Shown here: positions 3,830-45,709 of the stretch, piece by piece | Layout of the letters: every line of letters starts with the position of its first letter | How positions within the stretch are numbered: position 1 is the stretch's first letter | The notes under the pieces: model-generated | Told to the model about the DNA's origin: nothing | The model's database searches: none | The model's input: the letters and a program-made list of their open reading frames with translations, nothing else | DNA from: Trichosphaerium sp. ATCC 40318 | Lineage: Eukaryota; Protista; Tubulinea | Direction: 5' to 3' | Length of the DNA stretch: 52,669 bases | Assembly: GCA_038496445.1 (NCBI GenBank) | Contig: JALMLS010000445.1 | Coordinates: forward strand, 1 to 52,669 | Position numbers and translations under genes: made by a program

Positions 3830-6800
3830 ATGTCTGAACAAAAACAACATACAGAAGAAACGCTATCGTTAGAAGGTTAGTAACAAGAAACATGATATTT
3901 TCACGTGTGCATTTAACAGTTCCAATGTAGACGAATTGGCGATACTTCGCAGACAATACGAAAGTATTACAACACGTGCGCTTACTCTTAACATGGCTTT
4001 TAATATCTTGTGACAATCTGTAGTAAATGACCTAAACAGCAGATTATGTAACGAAAAGTTTGATGAGACAATTCTATTGTACTCAGGTATGTACAATACG
4101 CTCATACAATATAAAACTGTATTTTAGCCCAACATGGTCTGGCTATTATTACAACACTGTGTATACATAAGGGTACCAACCTTGAATATACAAACAGTGA
4201 TGGACGGACAGCTATGCATCTTGCAGGTGACTTACTATATCGTTGTCAATACCCTTTTTGTTGTCAATGTACATTTGATGTAACTTGTACCTCTAGCATG
4301 TAATGGACACATTAAAGTTGTTGAAATATTACTTAATTCAAATGCAGATATTGAAGCAAAAGACAATGATGGATACACACCTCTCCATCGTGCAGGTACT
4401 TGAGTCTATTTAGTGTCCAAATGTTGTAATTTGTAATTCGTAGCACGTCATGGACACATTAAAGTTGTTGATATATTACTTGGTTCAAATGCAGATATTA
4501 AAATAAAAAATAACAATGGATGGACAGCTCTCCATCACGCTGGTACCTTGTTGTAAAGAAATGGATAGCTGTAACCACACTTCTTAGCACGTGATGGCCA
4601 TAGTAAAGTTGTTGAAATATTACTTGAATCAAACGCAGATATAGAAGCAAGGGGTATAGATGGGTGGACACCTCTACATCATGCCGGTACCTCTGTTGTC
4701 AAGAAATGGTAGATGTAACTCACACTTCTTAGCACGTGATGGCCATAGTAAAGTTGTTAAAATATTACTTGATTCAAATGCAGATATCGAAGCAAAAAAT
4801 AACAAAGGATGGACAGCTCTTCTCTTTGCAGGTACCTTACTGTTAATATATATATAATAACTTATATCTAACTTGTTTCTTAGCACGTAATGGACACAGT
4901 AAAGTTGTAGAAGTATTACTTGGTCAAAGAGTAAATATTGAAGCAAGGGGTATATATGGGTGGACACCTCTTCATCATGCCGGTACCATTTTGTTGTCAA
5001 GAAATGATAGATGTAACTCACACTTCTTAGCACGTGATGGCCATAGTAAAGTTGTTGAAATATTACTTGGTTCAAATGCAGACATCGAAGCAAAAAATAA
5101 CAATGGTGGGACAGCTCTCTTCTTAGCAGGTACCTTACTGTTAATATACTTGATGTAACTTGTGTTTCTTAGCACGTAATGGGCACATTAAAGTTGTAGA
5201 AATATTACTTGGCTCTAGTGCAAATATTGAAGTAAAGAATAACAATGGATTGACAGCTCTCCACCTTTCAGGTACCCATTTGTCAAAATTATGCAATTGT
5301 TGTAACCTTTCTTAGCATATTATGGGCATAATTCTGTTCTTGTTAGGTTATTGAAAATGAGTAAAGCCATTTCACTATCTACAAATATATGGCACAATAA
5401 GATGCTATTTAATAGGATAGTAATAGGTGTTGTTGATAATGATTCCTCATTCATTGCTGTATTTGAAACTGTGTTGACAGTTATGCTAAATGGCAAGCAA
5501 TCTAGCACTCTATGGCTATCTTGTGCAACAATGGAAGAAAGGCCACAATGGAGACTCAATCTTGCAAAATGGTTGCAATACTTGGTATGTCATTTCATTT
5601 TCAAAGAGTTTGTAAAACTAATTGTAATCATAACAGCCAACACGATCTTATTTTAAACTTGCATTACAAAAAGGGATTTGTTATTTAATATGTACATATG
5701 ATCGCATAGTTGTACAATCTTCGGTACGGCAGTCTTTCATCTCTGACTTTCAAATAACAGCTTTTTTTTAAAAGAGTTTCTGGATTCAGCACGGGGAATT
5801 AATGGAGGGACTATTATTCGACTTACCTGAGGATATGTGGATCAATCCAAAACACCCCAGTTGCATTGAGATATGTAAAAAAGAAGGATGGTGTACAAAC
5901 TCACTTAAAATAGCCAAGCAAAATCGTAGGATAATTTATACAATGCATTCTTTTTAAGTTACTATCTAGTCTTGCTGTGCTATGACTGTAACAAAAGAGG
6001 AGTCGCTTTATGTCAGTATTGTGCCGGTGAACATAACCCAAACCATGTAATTTATGTGCTAGAGTTGGTTATTAACTTTCTTCTAGAAACTTAGAAAATG
6101 GTCATTTGCTAAGCCTGCGTGTGAGTGCCAGGGTTGTGAACACAGTATTAATCCTACTTCTGTAAATCTTGTACTTGGTAACACACTTGCAGGTACAGCT
6201 CACCTTTCAATAGTGTCACACTAACACGCTGAAACTCAAGGATTAAAAAGTGAAACCTTCTGGGACTTAAATCCAAGATTACAGTATGCGCACTACTGGA
6301 ATAGATCTAACATTAAGTCAGTGTTCTTTCACAATTGTTTTGTCTAACTTTTATCGCAAGGGGTGCTGTTGAAAAAGCAACAGATTATAGAACGTTGAAT
6401 CTGTTTGATGACAACACTGTGGCCAAGAGAGAACTTGAGTTTCTTCATCAACAACTATCAAAAATGCCTGGATATGATAGAGTCACTGTTGTAGAAGCAC
6501 TTCTTGTATGCAATGATGTCTTGACTCGTAACTTTGGGATGTACAATACAATAGTGAAACACAGACATCAGTACGTTTAACAACAAGTTTCTATTAACTC
6601 AACAGAGCTTACTCTTGACTCAACGCCAATACAACTTACAGGTTCTTTATAAACAAGAGCTTACACTACTATTTAGAGAACTTCCAAAGTTATTTTGTAA
6701 AGACGAATGGAAACAAGACAGTCATAAGAGAGCAGTGGCTGTGAGGTTTAACGCTCTGATTAATGACAACAGCCCAAGTACAAACACTTTAGAACAGGTA

Positions 6801-7869
6801 ATGACATTCAACATTAATCATCTTACACGTTTTCAGTCACCAGTTTTATTGATGGTTCATGGTACATCTCCTGAAGCTGCTTTGAGTATTGTAAAAGCTG
6901 GATTTGGTACTGTGAGTTCTTTAGATGGCGGGTATTATGGTCAGGGTGTTTACTTTACTGTACATGGCCATGTTTCTTAATTTATTCTTAACCTGTATTG
7001 TTTAGCGTAGCCTTGAATATGCTTGCTCATATGATACATCAGGAAATCGAGAATTGACTCTTGTTTTAAGTCTAGTCACTCCCGGAAATGTATATCCTGT
7101 ACACCAACGACTTTGCTATTTTATTTATTTACTGGCAGTAATAGGTTACAGAAAAGCCTAATGATGATGATAACTTTTATGGTAAACCAATAAAACCAGG
7201 ATACCAGAGTCACTATGCATTGGTAGACAAACTTGGAATTGCAGTTTCAAATGACAAAGTGAATGAGGCAGTGTGCGATGAGTTGGTTGTGGCACAAGGT
7301 ATTCCAAAAAACAGTCAATTGTAGTAACTTGCATTACAAAATACAAAGTACTAACATTCCATTTTAGATGTTCAAGCTGTAGCACGATACATAATTAAAG
7401 TTGTAAAGCAACTAAGGAAACGTAATACAACCAAATCAAAAAAGAGTAACCCAAAAAACAAAAAAACAACCAAGACACCAAAGAGCGTTGCCGATGATGA
7501 GAGTGCCAAGAAAATCGAACTTGAAACAAACTCAGATAGCGATGATGAGTTGTCAGATGACAAAGAGAACTTGTTGAAAAACAGGTACACGTAATCACAG
7601 CATTTACTTTGTTCCTTATATACATGTACAGGCAATTATGGGGAGCTACAAATTTGAACAAGCCAAAACAATTGAGCGCACATGATTTACAAGTGCAAGT
7701 ATTATCAAATAAGATCAAGGAAAAAGATACCAAACTGGAAGAACAAGGTGCTCAACTAGAAGAAAAAGATGCAAAATTGAAAGAGCAATGCACAAAATTG
7801 AAAGAAAAAGATACTCAAATTGCTGAACTTCTTTCTCGAATTGCTAAGTATGAGAGTACACTCAAATAA
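3830..7869 (+). CDS. Ankyrin-repeat / UBR-type zinc finger / PARP-family ADP-ribosyltransferase / coiled-coil protein (copy A)
   Basis: About 8 ankyrin exons (A..GH.KVVEILL.SNADIEAK.N.GWT.LH.A, 4130-5271). Spliced Zn finger CTNSLKIAKQNLLLCYDCNKRGVALCQYCAGEHNPNHKLRKWSFAKPACECQGC (5890-6140). ART motifs MVHGTS, GYYGQGVYFT, EYACSY, GYQSH, CDELVV (6850-7300). K/D/E-rich linker and coiled coil to TAA 7869. The true start may lie further upstream. Confidence 0.85.
4130..5271 (+). repeat. Tandem array of single-ankyrin exons (~99 nt exon plus ~45 nt phase-1 intron)
   Basis: Recurring unit 'tag|ca.g..atgg.ca.a.taaagttgt.gaaatattactt...tcaaatgcagata..gaagcaa...g|gtacc'. Introns at ~4543, ~4686 and ~4983 resemble each other, as do ~4832 and ~5132. 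Confidence 0.9.
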
Positions 7870-9626
7870 AATTGAAACTTGTAATGAAAAGTAATGTACT
7901 CACAATAAAGTAAATAGAACTTTTAAAAGGATATCGCTGTGTTATTGAACCTTTTTCAGGTAGTGTGACAGGCGAATCTAGCAACACAACAACTATAGCT
8001 ATTTCAATCTCTCTTGAAGAACTACTTCATGGAGGCCTATTAGTATAGGCAAGTCTGATGTTCATATCTAGAACTAGTGTAGATTTAACAAATCTGAAGT
8101 TCGTGTATAAGTTGTTGACAACATAATGTTTACTGAATTTTATTGAAGTACATTACATTGTACGTGTATCAACGTCTATCTCTGTTTATTCCACTTCTCC
8201 AATTTCAATGGTTCTACCTGGAGCAAAGAAGTTCAGTACTTCAGTGCTCTTAGCAGAAGTCCATTCTGGTTCTTTGTCAACCGGCCACACATACAAACCT
8301 GAAAAACAGAACTAAGAATCGAGTGTAGAGTCAAAAACAGCATACCTTGAATGGTTCCATTGGATCCAGGCCATGCCCAATGATTCACACCGTACACTTG
8401 CATTTTACAATTAGTCTCTATGCACAATGCAATTATTTTTTTGCCTTCAGCAGATCTTGTCTTATCGATGACATGCCCTAAACAACCATGTTAAAAAAAG
8501 AAAGCGTTTCGAAAAGTGGTTACCTTTGGTATCAAAGTGGATTTGAATACGTGGATGATCATGTACAACGCCATCGTATGACACAGAAGTTATTTTATAA
8601 CGACGCCATTTTGGAGAGTCTGTTGCATAGCGTAGATCGATACAGCTTGTTGGTGTATCAGCATCAGAAGGAACAGGGACTGGTTTGATCTTTGCTTGTT
8701 CTTCAGTGAGAATAGACCAAAGTTGGTTAGCGGTATGGTTGCTTGTGAATTGTAAAATAGCAGCGCCTTGTTCGCTTGTTGATCCTGGGACTTCCACACA
8801 TTTACCAGAGTTAACGTTGATAATCACTTTGTCTGAAAGAGACAGTTAGTTCAAAGATACAAGTGTATTCAGAAATTAGGAGCGTACATCCTTCATGGTC
8901 TTCAATGTACCACCTTTGAGTATTACTTCCGTGCCAATAGTACGTAATGGCGCGGGCACCATCCTTTTTGTCTCCATAGAAGATATCTAGAACCTAGGGT
9001 ATTGTTTGTTAGTATGCTGCGACTAAATTAAACTAACACATTCAACTTACATCGTTGTTGAAGGCAGTGATCTTGTATGTTTGTTTTCCAGCAACAATAT
9101 CCGATTTTTCAATCTTGTAAAGCTGTTTGGCATTGTCGGTTTCTTTCAGAGTACTTTGGATAATGTCACACACTTCTTTGTTTGTCACCATTTGTCCAGT
9201 TTGTTTCGTCTCGAATACAAGACCAGTGCATTTGTTCTTAAAGTAAACAGGTTTGTCGTAACTCATTTTTTATGTTGTTGTTATTTGTAGAGTTGTTGTT
9301 GCGTGTGTTGTTGAAGATTGTAATTGATATTAAGGAGGGTAACAAGTATTCTCATAACGTGAGAATGACAGGTTTTTTGACCGAAGGATATTTTCAGTTA
9401 ACAATTAACTAAAACAGCAATGGAGTCTTGGTAGTCGCGCAAGACAATCTATAAGATAACTACATACATTCGTTTATTGACTCAAGATGAACGACAGTTT
9501 TTTACCATGCAGTAGTGTAGCAACCTATGAACTGATCCTTAAACAATACACTGTTAATAACTATTGAGCAAATACAGAACACCTAATCTCCCAAATCTTT
9601 TGTCACACGTGATATTTTCCAGAGAA
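6684..9626. repeat. Left arm of a large inverted duplication (partner 11883-14627)
   Basis: Reverse-complement match from 'ccaaagttattttgtaaaga' (6684 / 14627) through the ART 3' half and the ricin-B gene to 'cacgtgatattttccagagaa' (9606-9626 / ~11883-11903). Confidence 0.92.
8186..9266 (-). CDS. Cytosolic ricin-B (beta-trefoil, QxW) lectin with an unrecognised C-terminal domain (copy A)
   Basis: Five exons: MSYDKPVYFKNKCTGLVF...AKQLYKI; VLDIFYGDKKDGARAITYYWHGSNTQRWYI; IINVNSGKCVEVPGSTSEQGAAILQFTSNHTANQLW (QxW ricin repeats); then ~130 aa ending NFFAPGRTIEIGEVE*. No signal peptide. Confidence 0.85.
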
Positions 9627-10162: not shown

Positions 10163-11647
10163 ATGTGTGACGATAATGGTATGGTACAAGCGCCTTAACA
10201 GGCCCTTTCGGGTATTACAAAACCTCATTGCGTTATAACCATACGTGACGCAACCACAACTTGTTTTATAGCATTTATGCGCGTGTCAGCATAGTTTTAC
10301 GCTAAAACTCCCGTTTTTACTCAAACGCAACGGACACGCTCTAATTTCATTCATAGTAAAAGCTTTGGTGGTAGATAATGGATCCGGTTTGTGTAAGGCT
10401 GGTTTTGCTGGCGATGACTCCCCACGTTCTATCTTCGCGTCTGTTGTCGCTCACAGCAAGGAAAAAGAGGAATCATACGTAAGTAAAGAAGCGCAAGCCA
10501 AACGCGCCGTTCAAACCTTGACGTACCCAATTGAACGTGGTATTGTAACCAACTGGGACGATATGGAGAAAATATGGCATACCGCCTTCAACGAACTCCA
10601 TGTTACACCAGAAGATCACCCAGTTCTCCTCTCTGAAGCACCATTGACCACAAAAGCAGACAAGTACACAGAACTGTCCTTTTACACTTTTATTGTTTTT
10701 TTTGAAGATTCCGAAAAAAGAAGTTGTTGTTTTTGCTTACCTATTGTTACTTTAGAGAGAAGAGGACCCAGATCATGTTTGAGACTTTCAATTTGAAGGC
10801 GTTATACGCTGAAGTACAGTCAGTATTGTCTTTGTATGCTTCTGGAAGAACAACAGGTGTGCTAGTCAACTTAACAAAAAAACAAGAAATCAAAAAACAA
10901 ATTCTTTGCTTTCTTTCGTACTTACTAACTTTGATATCTTCAGGTCTTGTTCTTGATTCTGGTTATGGTGTAACACATGTTGTACCTATTTTCGAAGGTA
11001 GAACCATCGATAACTGTATCATGCGTATGGATTTAGCTGGTCGTGATCTCACTAATTATTTGATGAAAATACTCTCTGAAAGCGGCTACTCTTTTGCCAC
11101 ACCATCAAAGGATGGTCAAGCTTTCGTAGCAGCCGAGAGAGAAATTATTCGTGACATGAAAGAGAAGCTCTGCTATGTTTCTCTTGACTTTAAACAAGAA
11201 ATGAGCACAGCTGAATCATCCTCTTCAATCAAGAAGTCACATGAGTTCCCTGATGGTAGAACCATAACTGTTGGTAATGAGCGTTTCAGATGCCCTGAAG
11301 CACTCTTTCAACCTTCATTGCTTGATGTTAAATCACCTGGAATTCATGAGTTAGTACATAACTCAATCTTGAAGTGTGGTTGTGGTCTCTATAAAGACTT
11401 GTACGGTAACATCGTACTCTCTGGTGGTTCTAGTATGTTCACAGGTATTACTGATCGCATGAAGAAAGAGGTGAGTGCTCTTGCATCTGACAATATAAAA
11501 GTTGAGATCGTTGAACCGAAAAAGTACTCTGTTTGGGCTGGTGGTTCTGTACTTTCTTCCCTACCTATGTTTGACCAATTGTGTATACCTAAAGAAGAAT
11601 ATGACGAATGTGGTCCTTCTATTGTGCATAAAAATCGGCTTGAATAG
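10163..11647 (+). CDS. Divergent actin / actin-like protein
   Basis: MCDDN|[112 protein letters not shown]. Three introns (~10179-10356, ~10664-10754, ~10857-10943). Confidence 0.95.
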
Positions 11648-12183: not shown

Positions 12184-13243
12184 ATGAGTTACGACAAACC
12201 TGTTTACTTAAAGAACAAATGCACTGGTCTTGTATTCGAGACAAAACAAACTGGACTAACTGCTAACAACAAAGAAGTGTGTGACATTATCCAAAGTACT
12301 CTGAAAGAAACCGACGATGCCAAACAGCTCTACAAGATTGAAAAATCGGATATGGTTGCTGGAAAACAAACATACAAGATCACTGCCTTCAACAACGATG
12401 TAAGTTGAATTTAGTACTTGTCAGGAAACCTGTGACAGTTCTTTTTAGGTTCTAGATATCTTATACGGAGAAAAGAAGGATGGTACACGAATCATTACGT
12501 ACTATTGGCACGGAAGTAATACTCAAAGGTGGTACATTGAAGACCATGAAGGATGTACGCTCCTAATTTTTTCTTCCGAATATAATTAATTCTCTTTTAG
12601 ACAAAGTGATTATCAACGTTCACTCTGGTAAATGTGTGGAAGTCCCAGGATCAACAACCGAACAAGGCGCTGCTCTTTTACAATTCACAAGCAACCATAC
12701 CGATAATCAACTTTGGTCTATTCTCACTGAAGAACAAGCAAAGATCAAACCAGTCCCTGTTCCTTCTGATGCTGATACACCAACGAGTTGTATCGATCTC
12801 CGCTATGCAACCGACTCTCCAAAATGGCGTCGTTATAAAATAACTTCCGTGTCATATGATGGTGTTGTACATGATCATCCACGTATTCAAATCCACTTTG
12901 ATACCAAAGGTGATTATTTTCAAAACGCTTTCTTTTTTTAACATGGTTGTTTAGGGCATGTCATCGATAAGACAAGATCTGCTGAAGGCAAAAAAGTAAT
13001 TGCATTGTGCATAGAGACTAATTGTAAAATGCAAGTGTACGGTGTGAATCATTGGGCATGGCCTGGATCGAATGGAACCATTCAAGGTATGCAGTTTTTG
13101 ATAATATAATATTCTCATGCCTGCGTTTAGGTTTGTATGTGTGGCCGGTTGACAAAGAACCAAAATGGACTTCTGCTAAGAGCACTGAAGTACTTAACTT
13201 CTTTGCTCCAGGTAGAACTATTGAAATTGGAGAAGTGGAATAA
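12184..13243 (+). CDS. Cytosolic ricin-B lectin with C-terminal domain (copy B)
   Basis: Same five-exon structure and near-identical protein as 8186-9266. ORF track pieces 12184-12408, 12606-12941 and 13052-13243 are its exons. Confidence 0.85.
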
Positions 13244-13493: not shown

Positions 13494-14627
13494 TTACTTT
13501 TTACTCTCATACTTAGCGATTCGAGCAAGAAGTTCAGCAATTTGAGTATCTTTTTCTTTCAATTTTGCGTCTTTTTCTTCTAGTTTAGCTCCTTGTTCTT
13601 GCAGCTTTGCATTTTTTTCCTTGATTGTATTTGATAATACTTGTACTTGTAAATCATGTGGGCTCAATTGTTTTGGCTTGTTCAAATTTGTAGCTCCCCA
13701 TAATTGCCTGTACATGTAAGTAAGGAACAAAGTAAAATGCTATGATCACGTGTACCTGTTTTTGAACAAGTTGTCTGACAACTCATCCTCACTATCTGAG
13801 TCTATGTCAAGTTCAATTTTCTTTTTGGTACTCTCATCATCGGCAACGTTCTTTGGTGTCTTGGTTTTTTTGTTTTTTGGTTTACTCTTTTTTGATTTGG
13901 TTGTATTACGTTTCCTTGGTTGTTTTACAACTTTAATTATGTATCGTGCTACAGCTTGAACATCTAAAATGGAATGTTAGTACTTTGTATTTTGTAATGC
14001 AAGTTACTACAATTGACTGTTTTTTGGAATACCTTGTGCCACAACCAACTCATCGCACACTGCCTCATTCACTTTGTCATTTGAAACTGCAATTCCAAGT
14101 TTGTCTACCAATGTGTAGTGACTCTGGTATCCTGGTTTTATGGGTTTACCATAATAGTTATCATCATCAGTAGGCTTTTCTGTAACCTATTACTGTTGTA
14201 AACAAATAAAAAGCTGAGGCAATGTTGGTGTACAGGATATACATTTCCTGGTGTGACTATACTTAAAACAAGAGTCAATTCTCGATTTCCTGATGTATCA
14301 TATGAGCAAGCATATTCAAGGCTACTCTAAACAATACAGGTTAAGAATAAATTAAGAAACATGTCCATGTACAGTAAAGTAAACACCCTGACCATAATAC
14401 CCGCCATCTAAAGAACTCACAGTACCAAATCCAGCTTTTACAATACTCAAAGCAGCTTCAGGAGATGTACCATGAACCATCAATAAAACTGGTGACTGAA
14501 AACGTGTCATTACCTGTTCTAAAGTGTTTGTACTTGGGCTGTTGTCATTGATCAAATCTTTAAACCTCACAGCTACTGCTCTCTTATGTCTGTCTTGTTT
14601 CCATTCATCTTTACAAAATAACTTTGG
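13494..14627 (-). pseudogene. 5'-truncated copy of the ADP-ribosyltransferase / coiled-coil half of the ANK-UBR-ART gene
   Basis: Contains HGTSPEAA...GQGVYFT, EYACSY, CDELVV and the coiled-coil tail (...AKYESKK*). Homology ends mid-exon at PKLFCKD (14627) with no matching upstream exons adjacent. Confidence 0.8.
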
Positions 14628-15020
14628 CGTTTATAAATTAGGTGATGACCTACAACATCTCTTAATTTTTTAAAGTCTGTATCTACTTCACTACCTAAAA
14701 TACAAGGAGTCATTCGTAACAAACACCAAGAGTCACATGAACCATGGAATAACTGGTACTATTGTTGGAACAATAGTGCGCGTTCAGCTTTTTAGGACCA
14801 CCTAGCACTTTTAATTCAACAGCCATGAACCGAACAACTTAAGCGGAATAAAAAAATCAGACAGTTGACTTCTACTTAACGTTTCTGTACGCTTCCTGGC
14901 TTAATGTCGGTAAGAATGGTGATTAAGTGTTTAATATCACCCAGATAAACGCATTTAATCCCCCCTCAAGTTCTCCTTTTACTTAACATTTGCTCAACGA
15001 AAACTAACGGTGATCATACA

Positions 15021-16100
15021 ATGGACAAGAAAAACCAACAAACGCAGTTCAACCAAGTATTCGACCTTGTTGCGCTACCGATTGAGTTAATAGTCCATAT
15101 TCTCAAACAAGGGACGTATACACTTCGTACAGCCCAAACGTGCCATTTTTTACGAGATATTGTTCACAACCACGTTGGGTATGGTTGTATCAGTATTAAA
15201 AACACAAATGAAGTTCAGATGCTTTCTGGTAGCCCATTACTCCACAATACGAATATTGATTTTTTTCTAAATCTGCCAAACGACATTATTGCGGCATTGG
15301 CAGGTGTACACACTATCAACCTATTTCATTGTAAATCAATAACAGACAATGGCATTGCGGCATTGGCAGGTGTACATGATATTGATTTATCAGACACAAA
15401 TGTAACAGATGAAGGTTTGAAGGCATTGGCAGGTGTGCACACAATCTACTTGAACGCTTGTGAGTCAATAACAGACAATGGCATTGCGGCATTGGCAGGT
15501 GTACATGAGATTAATTTATCATATACAAATGTAACAGATGAAGGTTTGAAGGCATTAGCAGGTGTGCACACTGTCTGGTTGGAAGCTTGTGAGTCAATAA
15601 CATACAATGGCATTGCGGCATTGGCAGGTGTACATGAGATTGATTTATCAGATACAAATGTAACAGATGAAGGTTTGAAGTCATTAGCAGGTGTACACAC
15701 TATCGACTTGGCTTGTTGTACGTCAATAACAGACAATGGCATTGCAGCATTGGCAGGTGTACACACTATCAACCTATGTGGTTGTATGTCAATAACAGAC
15801 AATGGCATTGCAGCATTGGCAGGTGTACATGAGATTAGTTTAGCTCACACACGTGTCACAGATGAAGGTTTAAAGGCATTGGCAGGTGTACATGAGATTC
15901 ATTTATCAGATACAAATGTAACAGATGAAGGTTTGAAGGCATTGGCAGGTGTACATACTATCAACCTATGTTATTGTGAATCAATAACAGACAATGGCAT
16001 TGCAGCATTGGCAGGTGTACATGAGATTAGTTTAGCTAACACACGTGTCACAGATGAAGGTTTAAAGGCATTGGCAGGTGTACACGCTATCTATCATTAA
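15021..16100 (+). CDS. Intronless F-box-like / leucine-rich-repeat protein
   Basis: N-terminal LVALPIELIVHIL...AQTCHFLRDIV (F-box-like). About 12 mostly alternating 25/24-aa LRRs AGVHxIxLxxCxSITDNGIAAL / AGVHxIxLSxTNVTDEGLKAL. Confidence 0.9.
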   Translation: MDKKNQQTQFNQVFDLVALPIELIVHILKQGTYTLRTAQTCHFLRDIVHNHVGYGCISIKNTNEVQMLSGSPLLHNTNIDFFLNLPNDIIAALAGVHTINLFHCKSITDNGIAALAGVHDIDLSDTNVTDEGLKALAGVHTIYLNACESITDNGIAALAGVHEINLSYTNVTDEGLKALAGVHTVWLEACESITYNGIAALAGVHEIDLSDTNVTDEGLKSLAGVHTIDLACCTSITDNGIAALAGVHTINLCGCMSITDNGIAALAGVHEISLAHTRVTDEGLKALAGVHEIHLSDTNVTDEGLKALAGVHTINLCYCESITDNGIAALAGVHEISLANTRVTDEGLKALAGVHAIYH

Positions 16101-16329
16101 CGGCTATAGGAATAAGCGCACTGGTAGGTGCAAAATTAATTAGCTTGGAAACATTCAGCAAAATTATTTCGTGTCATGTGCAATATGTAAGCAGTTGTTG
16201 CTCTAGTAAAGTTCTATTAATCAGTAAGAAAAAATTACTAGTATCTCCATGAAACACATTTGGTGCCTTAGGACTAAGTTTCAAAGCTGATAACATGACT
16301 TTTTATCAATACATACAATGTGACTTGCG

Positions 16330-17746
16330 TGCCAAGTATTGCAACCATTTCGCAAGATTGTCTCCATTGTGGTGTTTTGTTCAGTGTTGCGTATTTTAAC
16401 CATAACGTACTAGAAAGCTTACCATCTGGGAATAATGTCAACACAGTTTCAAATACAGCAACAAATGAAGAATCATTAGCAATAACACGCAGTATCTGAA
16501 CAACTATCTTTTGCCATCTTATTGTGCCATATTTTTGCAGATAGTGAAATATCTTTACTACATTTCAATAAAGTAACAACAACAGAATTATGTCCATAAT
16601 ATGCTAAAAACGTTACAGTAATTGTATTGACAACCATAAAGTACCTGCGCAATGCAGAGCTGTACATCCATTTTTGTCTTTGGCTTCAGTATCTGCATTT
16701 GAACCTAGCAACATTTCTACAACTTTATTGTGACCTTGATGCGCTAGAGGTAAAAGTTACATAGTTTGCAGTGACAACAGTAAGGCGCCTGCACGATAGA
16801 GAACTGTCCAGCCATTTTTAGACTTTACTTCTACATCAGCACTTGCTCCAAGTAATAATTCAACAACTCTACTATGTCCTTGATGTGCTAGAGGTAAAAG
16901 TTAATACAAGTGCGATACCATCGTGTACCTGCACGGTGAAGAGGTGTCCTTCTTTGTCTTTAGCTTCAATATCTGCATTTGATCCAAGTAGCAATTTAAC
17001 AACTTTACTTTGTCCATGATGTGCTAGGAGGCAGTAAAAACAAATGTATTACCAACAATAGCTACCTGCAACATGAAGAGGTGTCCATCCATTTCTATTT
17101 TTTGTGTCAATATTTGCGTTTGATCCAAGTAATATTTTAACAACTTTAGTGTCCATGACGCGCTATAGGTACAAATTACAATAATTGACTGATAACAATG
17201 ATAAGGTACCTGCACGATGAAGAACTGTACATCCAAAATGATCTTTTGCTTCAATATTTGCTGTTGACCTAAGTATTTTGACAACTTTACTATGTCCATA
17301 ACGTGCTTGAAATACAAATTAAAAAAAGAATACTCTGACAACAAGCTACCTGCACAATATAGAGGTGTCCATCCATCACTGTTTGTATATTCAAAGTTTG
17401 CACCCTTATGTATACACATTGTTGTAATAATGGCCAGGCCATGCTGCGCTAAAATCAAGTTGATATTCACATGTGGTTCGATACATGCCTGCATGCAATA
17501 GTATTGTGTCAGCTGACTCTTCTTCACATAAGCTGCTATTTAGCTCGTCTACTACAGGTTGTCTCAACAACAATACAAACATATAAGAGGTATCCGCACT
17601 CGTTGTAATTCTCTCGTATTTTTTGCTCAGTATCGCCAATTCATCTACATTGGAACTGTTAAATAGCGCGCGCGAAAATATCATGTTTCTTGTTACTAAC
17701 CTTCTAACAATAGCGTTTCTTCTGCAGTGCGTCTTTCTTCAAACAT
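16330..17746 (-). pseudogene. Diverged N-terminal paralog of the ANK-UBR-ART gene (about 6 ankyrin exons plus helical domain, no UBR/ART)
   Basis: MFEERRTAEETLLLE start exon, NVDELAILSKKYERITT, HKGANFEYTNSDGWTPLYCA, further ankyrin exons, YYGHNSVVVTLLK...QWR..LAKWLQYL. Small indels present. Homology to copy A stops at ~16330. Confidence 0.7.
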
Positions 17747-41582: not shown

Positions 41583-44500
41583 TTACTTTTTACTCTCAAG
41601 CGTAGCAATTCGAGCAAGAAGCTCAGCAATTTCTGTATCTTTTTCTTCTAGTCTTGCATCTTTTTCCTTGATTTTATTTGATAATACTTGTACTTGTAAA
41701 TCATGTGCACTCAGTTGTTTTGGCTTGTTCAAACTTGTAGCTCCCCATAATTGTCTGTACATGTAAGTAAGGAACAAAGTAAAATGGTATCAGCATGTGT
41801 ACCTGTTTTTGAACAAGTTCTCTTCATCGTCTGACAACTCATCATTATCTGAGTCTGCTTCATGTTCTACATCAGTGACATCAGTTGATGTTTTGGTTGC
41901 TTGTGTTTTATTTTTTGGTTTACTCTTTTTTGATTTGGATGTTTTACGTTTGTGCTTTACAACTTTTATTATGTATCGTGCTACAGCTTGAACGTCTAAT
42001 ATGATAACATTAGTATCGGAATAAACAGTGGAATACCTTGTGCCACAACCAACTCATCACGCATTGCCTTATTGACTTTGTCTTCGGCAACAACAATACC
42101 TTTCTTGTCTACAAGTGTGTAGTGACTCTGGTATCCTGGTTTTATTGGTTTACCATAAAAGTTATCATCATCATTAGGCTTTTCTGTAACCTATTACTGC
42201 CAGTAAATAAATAAAATAGCAAAGTCGTTTGTACAGGATATACATTTCCAGGAGTGACTAGACTTAAAACAAGAGTCACTTCTCCATTTCCTGATGTATC
42301 ATATGAGCAAGCATATTCAAGGCTACTCTAAAAACAATACAGGTTAAGAATAAGTTTGAGACGTAGTTTCACATACAGTAAAGTAGATGCCTTGACCATA
42401 ATACCCGCCATCTAAAGAACTCACAGTACCAAATCCAGCTTTTACAATACTCAAAGCGGCTTCAGGAGATGTACCATGAACCATCAATAAAACTGGTGAC
42501 TGAAAACGTGTAAGATGATTAATGTTGAATATTATTACCTGTTCTAAAGTGGAGCTGTTGTTGTTGATTAGAGATTCAAACCTAGCTGCTACAGCTCTCT
42601 TATGACTGTCTTGCTGCCATTCGTCTTTACAAAATAACTTTGGAAGTTCTCTAAATAGTAGTGTAAGCTCCATTTGTTTATAAAGAAACCTGTTAGCGTA
42701 CTGATGTCTGTGTTTCACTATTATATTGTACATCCCAAAGTTACAAGTCAAGACATCATTGCATACAAGAAGTGCTTTTACAACAGTTACTTTATCATAT
42801 CCAGGCATTTTTGATAGTTGTTGATGAAGAAACTCAAGTTCTCTCTTGGCGACAGTGTTGTCATCAAACAGATTTAACGTTCTATAATCTGTTGCTTTCC
42901 CAACAGCCCTGTTTAAAGCGTAAGCTTGCTAGAAAATTATGGAATACTAAACTGACATATTATTAGATCTATCCCAATGATGAGCATACTGTAATCTTGG
43001 ATTTAAGTCCCAGAAGGTTTCACTTTTTAATCCTTGAGTTTCAGCGTGTTAGTATGACACTGTCAAAAGGTGAGCACATACCTGCAAGTGATTTACCAAG
43101 TACAAGATTTACAGAGGTAGGATTAATACCATGTTTGCAATTTTGGCATTCGCACACAAAGGTAACATTTTGTAATTTTTTAAATTTCTATCAATACCTG
43201 TTAATAAACTCAACTAGTACAGAAATTACATGGTTTTGGATATGCTCATCAGCGCAATACTGGCACAAAATCACTGCATCAGAGCTACATGTATAGCACA
43301 CTGAGACTAGATGGAACTTAAGTTGACGTGTTGTAGTACCAAGTTAAAAGAAGTTGCATTGTTTTTGGTACCATCTTGTTTGGATACTTTAAGTGAGTTT
43401 GTACACCATCCTTCTTTTTTACATATCTTAATACAGCTGGTTTGTTTTGGATTGACCCACATATTTTCAGGTAGGTCAAATAGTATGCCTTCCATTAATT
43501 CTCCATGCTCAAACCAAAAGGTCTTTAAAAACAGCTCGTTATTTGAATGTCACAAAATGAACAGTGTCGTACTGAAGATTGTACAACTATGCGATCATAT
43601 GTACATATTAAATAACAAATACCTTTTTGTAATGCAAGTTTAAAATAAGATCGTGTTGGCTGTTGTAATAACAATCAGTTTACAAGCTCTGTGAAAAAAG
43701 AAAGGGCATACCAAGTATTGCAACCATTTTGCAAGATTGAGTCTCCATTGTGGCACTTTGTTCAAAGCGCAAGATAGCCATAGTTGGCGGGATCGTTTAC
43801 CATTTGGGAATACTGTCAAGACAGTTTCAAATACAGAAATGAACAAGGAATCATTATCAACAACACCCAATAGTATCTTTTTAAATATTGTTTGTTGCCA
43901 TACATTTGTATCCAGTGAAATGGCTTTACTCATTTTCAACAACGTAACAACAACAGAACTATAGCCAAAGTACGCTAGGAATGTTACACACTCGTGTGTC
44001 AACAATAAGGTAGCATCATACCTGCATGCTGCAAAGCTGTCCATCCTTCGTTGTCTTTTGCTTCAATATCTGCGTTAGAACCAAGTAATATTTCAACAAC
44101 TTTACTACGCCCACCACGTGCTAAGAAATATAAGTTACAACAAGTTGTACATAAATAGACAACAGTAACACCTGCATAATGGAGAGCTGTCCATCCTTTA
44201 ACATTTTTTGCTTCTATATCTGCATTGAAACCAAGCAATTTTTTAGCAGCTTTACTCCTTCCATTACGTGCTAAAAGACTGGTTTATATTTTGGTGTAAC
44301 AGCAATAAGGTACCTGCAATATGGAGAGCTGTACATTCATTTTTATTTTTAGCTTCAATATCAGCGTTTGATCTAAGCAATATTTCAATAACATGAATGT
44401 GTCCTTTGCTGGCTAAAAAAATATAAGTTACATCAAGTTGTAGCAGTGACAACAGGTTAGTACATGCAAAATGGAGAGGTGTCCATCCTCCCTCATCTTT

Positions 44501-45709
44501 TGCTTCTATATTTGCGTTTGAACCAAGTAACATTTCAACAACCCTACTCTGTCCGAAATTTGCTAAGTTTACAATTATTATACATTGAGTGACACCAAGT
44601 TGTACCTGCATGATGGAGAGCTGTAGCTTCTTCGTTGTCTTTTGCTTCAATACCTGCGTTTGAACCAAATAATACTTCAATGACTTTAATGCGTCCATCA
44701 TTTGCTATAGGCCAAGTTACATCAATTGTACATTGACAACAATAAGGGTACCTGCAACATGGAGAGCTGTCCATCCAGAGTTGTCTTTTGCTTCAATATC
44801 TGCGTTTGAACCAAGTAATACTTCAGCAACTTTACTATGTCCATTTTGTGCTAGTACAAGTTCAATAATTTAAGATTGCTAATAAAGGTACATGAAAGAT
44901 GGAGAGCTGTCCATGCTTTGTTATTTTTTGCCGCAATATCAGTTTTTGAACTGATTAATACTTCAGCAACTTTGCTATGCCCACTCTTTGCTAGAAGAAG
45001 TTACAATAATTTTAAACTGACAACTATAAAGTACCTGCATGGTGGAGAGCTGTCCATCCAGAGTTGTCTTTTGCTTCAATGTCTGCGTTAGAATCAAGTA
45101 ATAATTCAACAACTTCTCTGTCCATCATATGCTAAGTTGTCAATAATTATACATTGACTGACACCAATTTGTACCTGCACGATGCAGAGCTGTCCATCCA
45201 TTTTTAGACTTTACTTCAATATTTACACCTAAACCAAGCAATGTTTCGACGACTTCACAATGTCCTTGATGTGCTAGAGGTACAAGTTACAATTGTATAT
45301 TGATAACAATATAGGTACCTGCACAATGGAGAGGTGTCCATCCTCCATTATCCATATATTCAAAGTTTGCGCCCTTTTGTACACAAATTGTTACAATAAT
45401 AGGCATACCATTCTGTGCTAAAATCCAGTTACATTCACTCGTGGTCAGATGTATACCTGCAAACAATAAAATTGTGTCGCCGAATTGTGTTTTACACAAT
45501 CTGCTGTTTAGCTCCTTTACTACAGATTGTCAAACATCTTAAAAACCATGGTAAGATTAAGCGCACCCGTTGTAATACTTTCATATCGTCCCCTCAGTAT
45601 TGCCAATTCGTCTGCATAACTGTTAAATAGAGCACGTGAAAATATCCTGTTCTTGTTACTAACCTTCTAACGTTAACGCTTCTTCTGTACTTTGTTTTTG
45701 TTCAGACAT
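41583..45709 (-). CDS. Ankyrin / UBR-type zinc finger / PARP-family ADP-ribosyltransferase / coiled-coil protein (copy C)
   Basis: MSEQKQSTEEALTLE start. About 10 ankyrin exons (44022-45420). Zn finger VCYTCSSDAVILCQYCADEHIQNH...FVCECQNC. HGTSPEAA, GQGIYFT, EYACSY, CDELVV. Coiled coil ending ATLESKK*. Confidence 0.85.

Follow-up and report, generated by a model that had tools for sequence, protein, structure and literature searches.

A putative ankyrin-array, PARP-type ADP-ribosyltransferase with a Cys/His zinc module in a locally duplicated gene family of the amoeba Trichosphaerium

Ankyrin repeats and PARP catalytic domains have been combined several times in evolution, with examples in Naegleria, Monosiga and Dictyostelium (PMC4245714; also PMC2964712), and true tankyrases have been reported only in animals (PMC2964712, PMC4245714). 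Neither ankyrin nor PARP is mentioned in the paper describing the Trichosphaerium genome (PMC10521059). This report concerns a gene at 3830-7869 on the plus strand of contig JALMLS010000445.1 of Trichosphaerium sp. ATCC 40318, together with its local copies; the whole 52,669-nucleotide stretch that was analysed is called the window. An original prediction, made from the bare sequence, had proposed a family that joins an ankyrin array, a zinc finger and a PARP-type ADP-ribosyltransferase (ART), an architecture that it did not recognise from known proteins. This view survives in part: a description of an ankyrin-finger-PARP-zipper layout was not found in the literature, but the underlying pairing of ankyrin with PARP had already arisen repeatedly in the lineages just named. 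The arrangement is a new one within a known kind of enzyme, an architecture variant and not a new kind of system. The gene is real, and the proposal that we favour, and consider likely from sequence comparison and structure modelling, is that it encodes a single protein of 964 amino acids, one of an amoeba family of PARP-type ADP-ribosyltransferases with ankyrin arrays that has been duplicated locally.

The model of this gene, hereafter copy 1, was built manually, guided by the sequence and by the colinearity of relatives, and each exon was then checked separately by script. It runs from an ATG at 3830 to a TAA at 7867-7869 and comprises 24 exons separated by 23 introns of 39-70 nucleotides (nt), with every junction GT-AG and all phases consistent. 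The spliced reading frame of 2895 nt consists of 964 codons plus the stop and contains no internal stops. The G+C content of the window (~36%) and its very short introns agree with the values reported for the genome, 37.7% G+C and introns averaging 75 nt (PMC10521059). The exons and the regions that they encode, with the basis of each assignment, are as follows.

3830-3875, 3931-3963 and 4024-4086, plus strand: exons 1-3, N-terminal cap with the start codon (GT-AG junctions, phases)
4128-4226, 4297-4395, 4444-4542, 4588-4686, 4733-4831, 4884-4982, 5031-5129 and 5173-5271, plus strand: exons 4-11, eight ankyrin repeats (Pfam)
5316-5584, plus strand: exon 12, a ninth, degenerate ankyrin repeat leading into the helical region (exon table)
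5637-5723, plus strand: exon 13, continuation of the helical region (colinear with the N-terminus of the relative P0002)
5775-5925, 5970-6046 and 6087-6192, plus strand: exons 14-16, Cys/His zinc module (ligands kept in copy 2)
6241-6316, plus strand: exon 17, conserved linker, GLKSE.FWDLNPRL... (kept in copy 2 and in the relatives P0001 and P0002)
6361-6574, 6642-6797, 6837-6959, 7006-7098 and 7145-7298, plus strand: exons 18-22, PARP catalytic domain (Pfam, relatives)
7368-7584, plus strand: exon 23, last part of the ART domain, followed by a Lys-rich and an acidic Ser/Asp stretch (pattern in relatives)
7632-7869, plus strand: exon 24, leucine-zipper coiled coil and stop (heptad pattern)

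All three exons of the N-terminal cap are also present in copy 2 and are matched in copy 3. The domain junctions fall within exons: that between ankyrin array and helical region lies in 5316-5584, that between helical region and finger in 5775-5925, and that between finger and linker in 6087-6192. Because each of these boundaries sits inside an exon, a single transcription unit extending from the ankyrin array to the zipper of copy 1 is by far the simplest reading of the sequence. The 24-exon model therefore upholds the claim of the original prediction that an ankyrin array, a helical region, a zinc module, a PARP-type ART domain and a coiled coil reside in one gene. One detail of the model has two readings. 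Within the ART domain, a 39-nt GT...AG stretch at 6798-6836 (plus strand) is in frame and free of stops in copies 1 and 2; its counterparts measure 39 nt in copy 2 (42543-42505) and only 18 nt in copy 3 (near 14500), and the relatives have a variable loop at the matching place. This stretch could be spliced out as a very short intron or read as a loop of 13 residues.

Searches with the window protein against Pfam and PDB sequences and by tblastn were carried out exon by exon. The first ART exon piece alone matched Pfam PARP at 20.7 bits, with an expect value (E) of 3e-4. An exhaustive search of representative proteins with this exon recovered 208 proteins at E <= 0.001, none above ~57% identity. 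The two best matches, P0001 and P0002, follow the order of the window gene through the helical region, ART domain, basic/acidic tail and coiled coil. Their identity to it is 53-57% in the first ART exon and 60-80% across the ART exons, and they pass the Pfam PF00644 cut-off of 26.7 bits with 36.5 and 30.9 bits, respectively. P0002 is carried by a transcript-like 2.6-kb contig of a related organism (L001 1-2604; Joint Genome Institute sample 3300016894), which contains at least seven ankyrin repeats, a run of N and a helical-PARP-zipper open reading frame (ORF), and has no zinc module. Of the Pfam families named in the original prediction, ankyrin and PARP are borne out, with strong matches for ankyrin in the window itself and with the PARP cut-off passed by the relatives.

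Structural evidence came from an AlphaFold model of P0002, computed from an alignment of 101 rows that combined family members with exon pieces of the window. Residues 170-425 were modelled with a predicted local distance difference test score (pLDDT) mostly above 90. Foldseek searches with this model retrieved tankyrase 1, PARP12, PARP3, PARP1, PARP4 and PARP10 at E ~1e-10 and template modelling (TM) scores, normalised to the target, of 0.65-0.75, the E values for tankyrase 1 and PARP12 being 6e-11 to 9e-11. The sequence profile of the family matched ZAP/PARP13 (1e-8), PARP12, PARP10, PARP4 and PARP14, and by this measure the ART domain is nearer the PARP12/13/10/14 group. Sequence and model together make the PARP-type assignment of the domain solid. 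A different candidate for exon 18, the UBA domain (PF00627), was rejected: it scored 19.3 bits against a cut-off of 22.4, P0001 and P0002 had no UBA match, and in the PARP model the homologous residues make up strands and helices, while in sequence they align with the N-terminal part of the ZAP catalytic fragment. Exon 18 is assigned to the N-terminal part of the ART domain because of these strands and helices and the alignment with the ZAP fragment.

The catalytic residues could be read from the alignment of family members. At the three triad columns, His was present in 68 of 92 relatives (Gln in 23), Tyr in 92 of 92 and Glu in 91 of 93. In copy 1 these columns are occupied by HGT and GVYF, both in exon 6837-6959, and by DELVV in exon 7145-7298; in the family profile alignment, DELVV places its Glu at the third triad position of PARP12. 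The placement of the H-Y-E triad at HGT, GVYF and DELVV in the original prediction was therefore correct, matching both the triad columns and the PARP12 positions, but its choice of ACSY for the second conserved Tyr was not: in the EYACSY sequence of exon 7006-7098, the Tyr conserved in the family (90/93) is that of EYA. With its triad intact, the ART domain appears complete, and the predicted enzyme is probably active. The Gln found at the first triad position in 23 of 92 aligned members marks a sub-family that includes P0003, P0004, P0152 and P0151; some of these proteins have two ART domains in tandem, and in such pairs the first triad residue is Gln. The same type of ART domain (GYYGxGIYF, PGYQSHY, DELV) was also found fused to ROC-COR, SAM, RCC1, Kelch and ankyrin-SH3 modules, and to extracellular FG-GAP/EGF/CUB modules.

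The ankyrin repeats of copy 1 matched Pfam Ank_4, Ank_2 and Ank with E values of 3e-11 to 9e-10, and eight of the nine are encoded as one repeat per 99-nt phase-1 exon. Across 15 repeats of copies 1 and 2, entropy was highest at repeat positions 13, 14, 3, 10, 2, 1 and 5. Designed ankyrin binders are randomised at six repeat positions, five of which are among these high-entropy positions. The pattern, from a small sample, fits an ankyrin array with a diversifying binding face. No Pfam family was matched by the helical region that follows (exons 12 and 13); its equivalent in P0002 was modelled as helices of low confidence, and an ESM Atlas search with the helical N-terminus of P0002 gave no match. 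At the other end of the protein, the basic-then-acidic order of exon 23 recurs in P0001, P0002 and P0006, and the coiled coil of exon 24 has Ile or Leu at every seventh residue through eight heptads. Compared with copy 1, the zipper is shorter by one heptad in copy 3 and by three in copy 2, always in whole heptads; the zippers of the three copies are located at 7632-7869 (copy 1), 13497-13700 (copy 3) and 41586-41756 (copy 2).

These parts suggest a working scheme for the protein. The nine ankyrin repeats, in which variation falls mainly on the canonical binding face, would hold a protein partner, and their symmetric exons would allow repeats to be duplicated or dropped without loss of frame. 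The array, perhaps together with the finger, would capture the partner; the ~85-residue zinc module that precedes the PARP domain could offer a second binding or regulatory surface, and the C-terminal leucine zipper could bring the protein into dimers or higher oligomers. The PARP domain, with its full fold including the N-terminal beta-alpha part, would then use nicotinamide adenine dinucleotide (NAD+) to ADP-ribosylate the held partner, itself or both. The Lys-rich tail hints at a nuclear location. By analogy, such a protein would follow a tankyrase-like logic of ankyrin capture, self-association and PARP catalysis, built from different parts.

The zinc module is the most distinctive of these parts. 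Its first exon (5775-5925) encodes C-x3-C-x5-C, its second (5970-6046) CxxC-x7-CxxC-x3-H-x3-H and its third (6087-6192) CxC-x2-C-x-H, and joining them at the gene's own splice sites yields C-x3-C-x5-C-x13-CxxC-x7-CxxC-x3-H-x3-H-x11-CxC-x2-C-x-H, which replaces the spacings of x11 and x10 given earlier by x13 and x11. The earlier statement that the Cys and His ligands are kept in two copies while neighbouring residues vary holds: 10 of 10 Cys and 3 of 3 His are identical between copies 1 and 2, whose finger exons are equal in length (151, 77 and 106 nt) and only 76, 56 and 60% identical in protein. The ratios of nonsynonymous to synonymous divergence (dN/dS) of these exons, from a rough Nei-Gojobori count between the two copies, are 0.13, 0.31 and 0.62. 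Conservation of the ligands, combined with ratios below 1, indicates that the module is under constraint.

Counted from the third Cys, the finger spans ~56 residues and contains exactly 8 Cys and 3 His in the order C / CxxC / CxxC / H..H / CxC / C..H, with two further conserved Cys upstream, and it probably binds three zincs. This order of residue types, including the C-terminal CxC, fits the layout of the UBR1/2 box. Both copies have an acidic residue, Glu, within the CxC (CEC), a position at which UBR1/2 carry CDC. The ligand count is also that of the UBR1/2 box, with 2Cys+2His plus 6Cys+1His (PMC10687169). We conclude from the sequence pattern that the module falls in the RING-like B-box/ZZ/UBR group, within which a UBR subtype is plausible but not demonstrated.

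A possible account, if on the unlikely side, is that the module is a B-box/ZZ-like element for self-association or scaffolding, with an extra zinc site, which senses no ligand and sits in a linker that tolerates it. The sole profile similarities that were found point in this direction. The Pfam matches of the central finger exon were to B-box models (zf-B_box_Trim66, E 9e-4; zf-B_box, E 0.009-0.05), and among PDB sequences, searched with single finger exons and with two-row profiles, the best matches were the B-box of TRIM21 (E 0.69) and the zinc site of RecQ5 (E ~1), with nothing significant. All of the Pfam matches (E 9e-4 to 0.05) are, however, below the curated cut-off; B-box itself (PF00643) scored 14.1-16.6 bits against 24.1, and over the C-terminal half of the profile only. 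The canonical N-terminal CxxC/H knuckle of B-box and ZZ is missing, and a C-terminal CxC is present instead. The weak B-box match does not discriminate between subtypes, because the B-box, ZZ and UBR cores are related folds: the UBR core is regarded as a circularly permuted relative of the other two, and a UBR query matches the B-box profile only weakly (PMC4506424).

The location of the module bears on the same account. At the corresponding site, the nearest relatives P0001 and P0002 have only a short linker without Cys, which in the P0002 model is of low confidence, and these relatives manage without the module. A regular-expression search found a similar finger in 0 of 155 fetched relatives; none of the seven proteins returned by a word search with P0002 has a finger, and a metagenome scan with the conserved exon-18 alignment for finger-bearing relatives was blank. 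Because P0001, P0002 and the 155 fetched relatives lack a similar finger, the module is read as an insert in the linker that is specific to the Trichosphaerium lineage.

The original prediction had gone further, comparing the spacing of the finger with that of a UBR box and linking recognition of N-degrons or histone tails to ADP-ribosylation. In its full form this explanation holds that a true UBR box reads N-termini or histone tails while the ankyrin array senses a ligand, both being coupled to ADP-ribosylation or NAD+ use in an innate-immune sensor-effector. The likeness of pattern is genuine, since from the third Cys on the finger has exactly the 8 Cys and 3 His of UBR1/2 (ligand count per PMC10687169) and ends in the permuted, C-terminal CxC knuckle that separates UBR from B-box and ZZ (PMC4506424). 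However, the three finger exons of both copies, searched singly, had no Pfam match to zf-UBR or ZZ at E values up to 10, the best result being the sub-threshold B-box. The last C..H spacing is x1 in the finger, as against ~x2 behind a long loop in UBR1/2. Three positions past the first CxxC, copy 1 has Arg and copy 2 has Asp, which speaks against a conserved N-degron pocket, and the closest relatives lack the finger altogether. For the immune half of the explanation, the presence of several divergent copies close together and the variable ankyrin faces are in its favour, whereas a scan of viral contigs for relatives was blank. Recognition of N-degrons or histone tails by the finger is conjecture, an immune or NAD-depleting role is a possible one but likewise conjectural, and the explanation as a whole appears doubtful. 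Still less probable is its broadest form, in which the module is a genuine UBR-type box for peptide recognition. Combined with the fast-varying, exon-modular ankyrin array, it would turn the proteins into a set of ADP-ribosyltransferases for pattern recognition, serving an amoebozoan immune or conflict system in which captured targets are tagged or NAD+ is spent on them.

The likely reading of copy 1 as one ankyrin-array ADP-ribosyltransferase of a duplicated family also has to accommodate the state of its neighbours. Tblastn of exon pieces revealed three gene copies in the window: the two full copies named in the original prediction and a third, finger-less copy at ~13500-17560 on the minus strand. 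The two copies besides copy 1 are as follows.

41583-45709, minus strand: copy 2, full architecture with ten ankyrin exons of the 99-nt type, zinc module, ART domain and a short zipper
13497-17561, minus strand: copy 3, reduced to ankyrin exons and the 3' portion with ART and zipper

Of the two copies formerly described as full, copy 1 is intact, but the third ankyrin exon of copy 2 (45131-45035) measures 97 nt and is frameshifted; copy 2 also has no intron between exons 18 and 19. In copy 3, an ORF on the opposite strand (15021-16100, plus strand) has taken the place of the zinc module and the N-terminal ART part. This ORF is intronless, has 359 codons and encodes an F-box-like N-terminus (LPIELIV..) followed by ~11 leucine-rich repeats of the type C.SITD.GI.ALAGVH, and it is built from a 66/129-nt tandem array.

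Such damage could mean that the locus is decaying duplicated DNA, with a copy 1 that only seems intact but is silent or without function. This view would expect a frameshift like that in copy 2 and an inserted gene like that in copy 3, but copy 1 has 24 exons without a stop, 23 of 23 introns GT-AG, and all of its catalytic residues and zinc ligands, and most exons show dN/dS below 1 when copies 1 and 2 are compared. In copy 2, moreover, the exon with the frameshift is of the symmetric type, and skipping it would restore the frame. Wholesale decay is accordingly improbable. Synonymous divergence between copies 1 and 2, estimated from two sequences and few sites (5637-7298 versus 41583-43600), is ~0.05-0.15 in exons 13, 18, 20 and 21 and 0.4-1.1 in the finger exons; this mosaic suggests, within the limits of so few sites, gene conversion or recombination between members of the family. 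The last alternative, that the ankyrin and ART halves belong to separate genes, as a gene caller had them on the L001 contig, is very improbable: the split between the ankyrin ORF and the ART ORF there coincides with the run of N, and in the window the last ankyrin repeat and the helical region share exon 5316-5584, after which no possible start exon follows.

Several points weigh against the favoured interpretation of copy 1 as one active protein of a functioning family. Its splicing and expression are predictions from genomic sequence. The family is also subject to decay, since damage is seen in two of its three local copies, and the divergence estimates that speak for constraint have the narrow base given above. 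An H-Y-E triad alone cannot separate poly- from mono-ADP-ribosylation, and activity is a prediction. The fold evidence comes from a homologue, P0002, which has no finger and whose link to an ankyrin array passes across a run of N.

A divergent actin-like gene (10365-11647, plus strand) lies at the centre of a palindrome whose outer arms are copies 1 and 3 of the ankyrin-PARP gene. Directly around it, a pair of small genes occurs as two inverted copies, at 8462-9266 (minus strand) and 12184-12941 (plus strand); one has an NQLWS motif reminiscent of ricin-type lectins.

PARP enzymes have mostly been discussed from animal examples, and the genes described here add a protist family. Its members combine a full H-Y-E triad with a domain that is closest in sequence to the mono-ADP-ribosylating 'antiviral' PARPs, and couple this ART domain with an ankyrin array of modular build and a zipper, plus an extra finger of the three-zinc type in the Trichosphaerium lineage. 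The family offers a case for asking how ADP-ribosyltransferases recruit new substrate-targeting modules, and whether such enzymes serve amoebae in conflicts, with giant viruses for instance.

Among the described proteins close to this plan, tankyrases 1 and 2 (PARP5a/b) likewise begin with ankyrins that capture partners, contain an element for self-association and end in an H-Y-E PARP domain, and tankyrase 1 is the top Foldseek match of the P0002 model. The window protein is nevertheless not a tankyrase, as the original prediction had held. Pfam found no SAM domain in any exon piece of the window or in P0001 and P0002, and a leucine zipper stands at the C-terminus instead; a Cys/His module and a helical region lie between ankyrins and ART; and the ART domain is by sequence profile nearer PARP13, PARP12 and PARP10. 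The 'Clade 3' enzymes PARP12, PARP13 (ZAP), PARP10 and PARP14 provide the best sequence-profile matches, including the N-terminal beta-alpha part, and PARP12 and PARP13 also join zinc fingers to an ART domain. These enzymes differ in having Ile, Leu or Val at the third triad position, where the family of the window has Glu in 91 of 93 members, and in carrying CCCH fingers, WWE or macro domains in place of ankyrins and a different finger. Dictyostelium ADPRT3 and C. elegans PME-5, Clade 1 PARPs of the ankyrin type, resemble the window protein in combining ankyrins with PARP outside the tankyrases; unlike it, they carry WGR and PARP-regulatory domains, for which Pfam gave no match in any exon piece or in P0001 and P0002. 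The zinc module, finally, resembles the UBR box (PF02207) and its relatives B-box (PF00643) and ZZ (PF00569) in its Cys/His-rich core of ~56 residues, in which 8 Cys and 3 His follow the UBR1/2 order with its C-terminal CxC, and in a weak B-box similarity; it departs from them in giving no significant exon-wise profile match, in the spacing of its last ligand pair and in its two extra upstream Cys.

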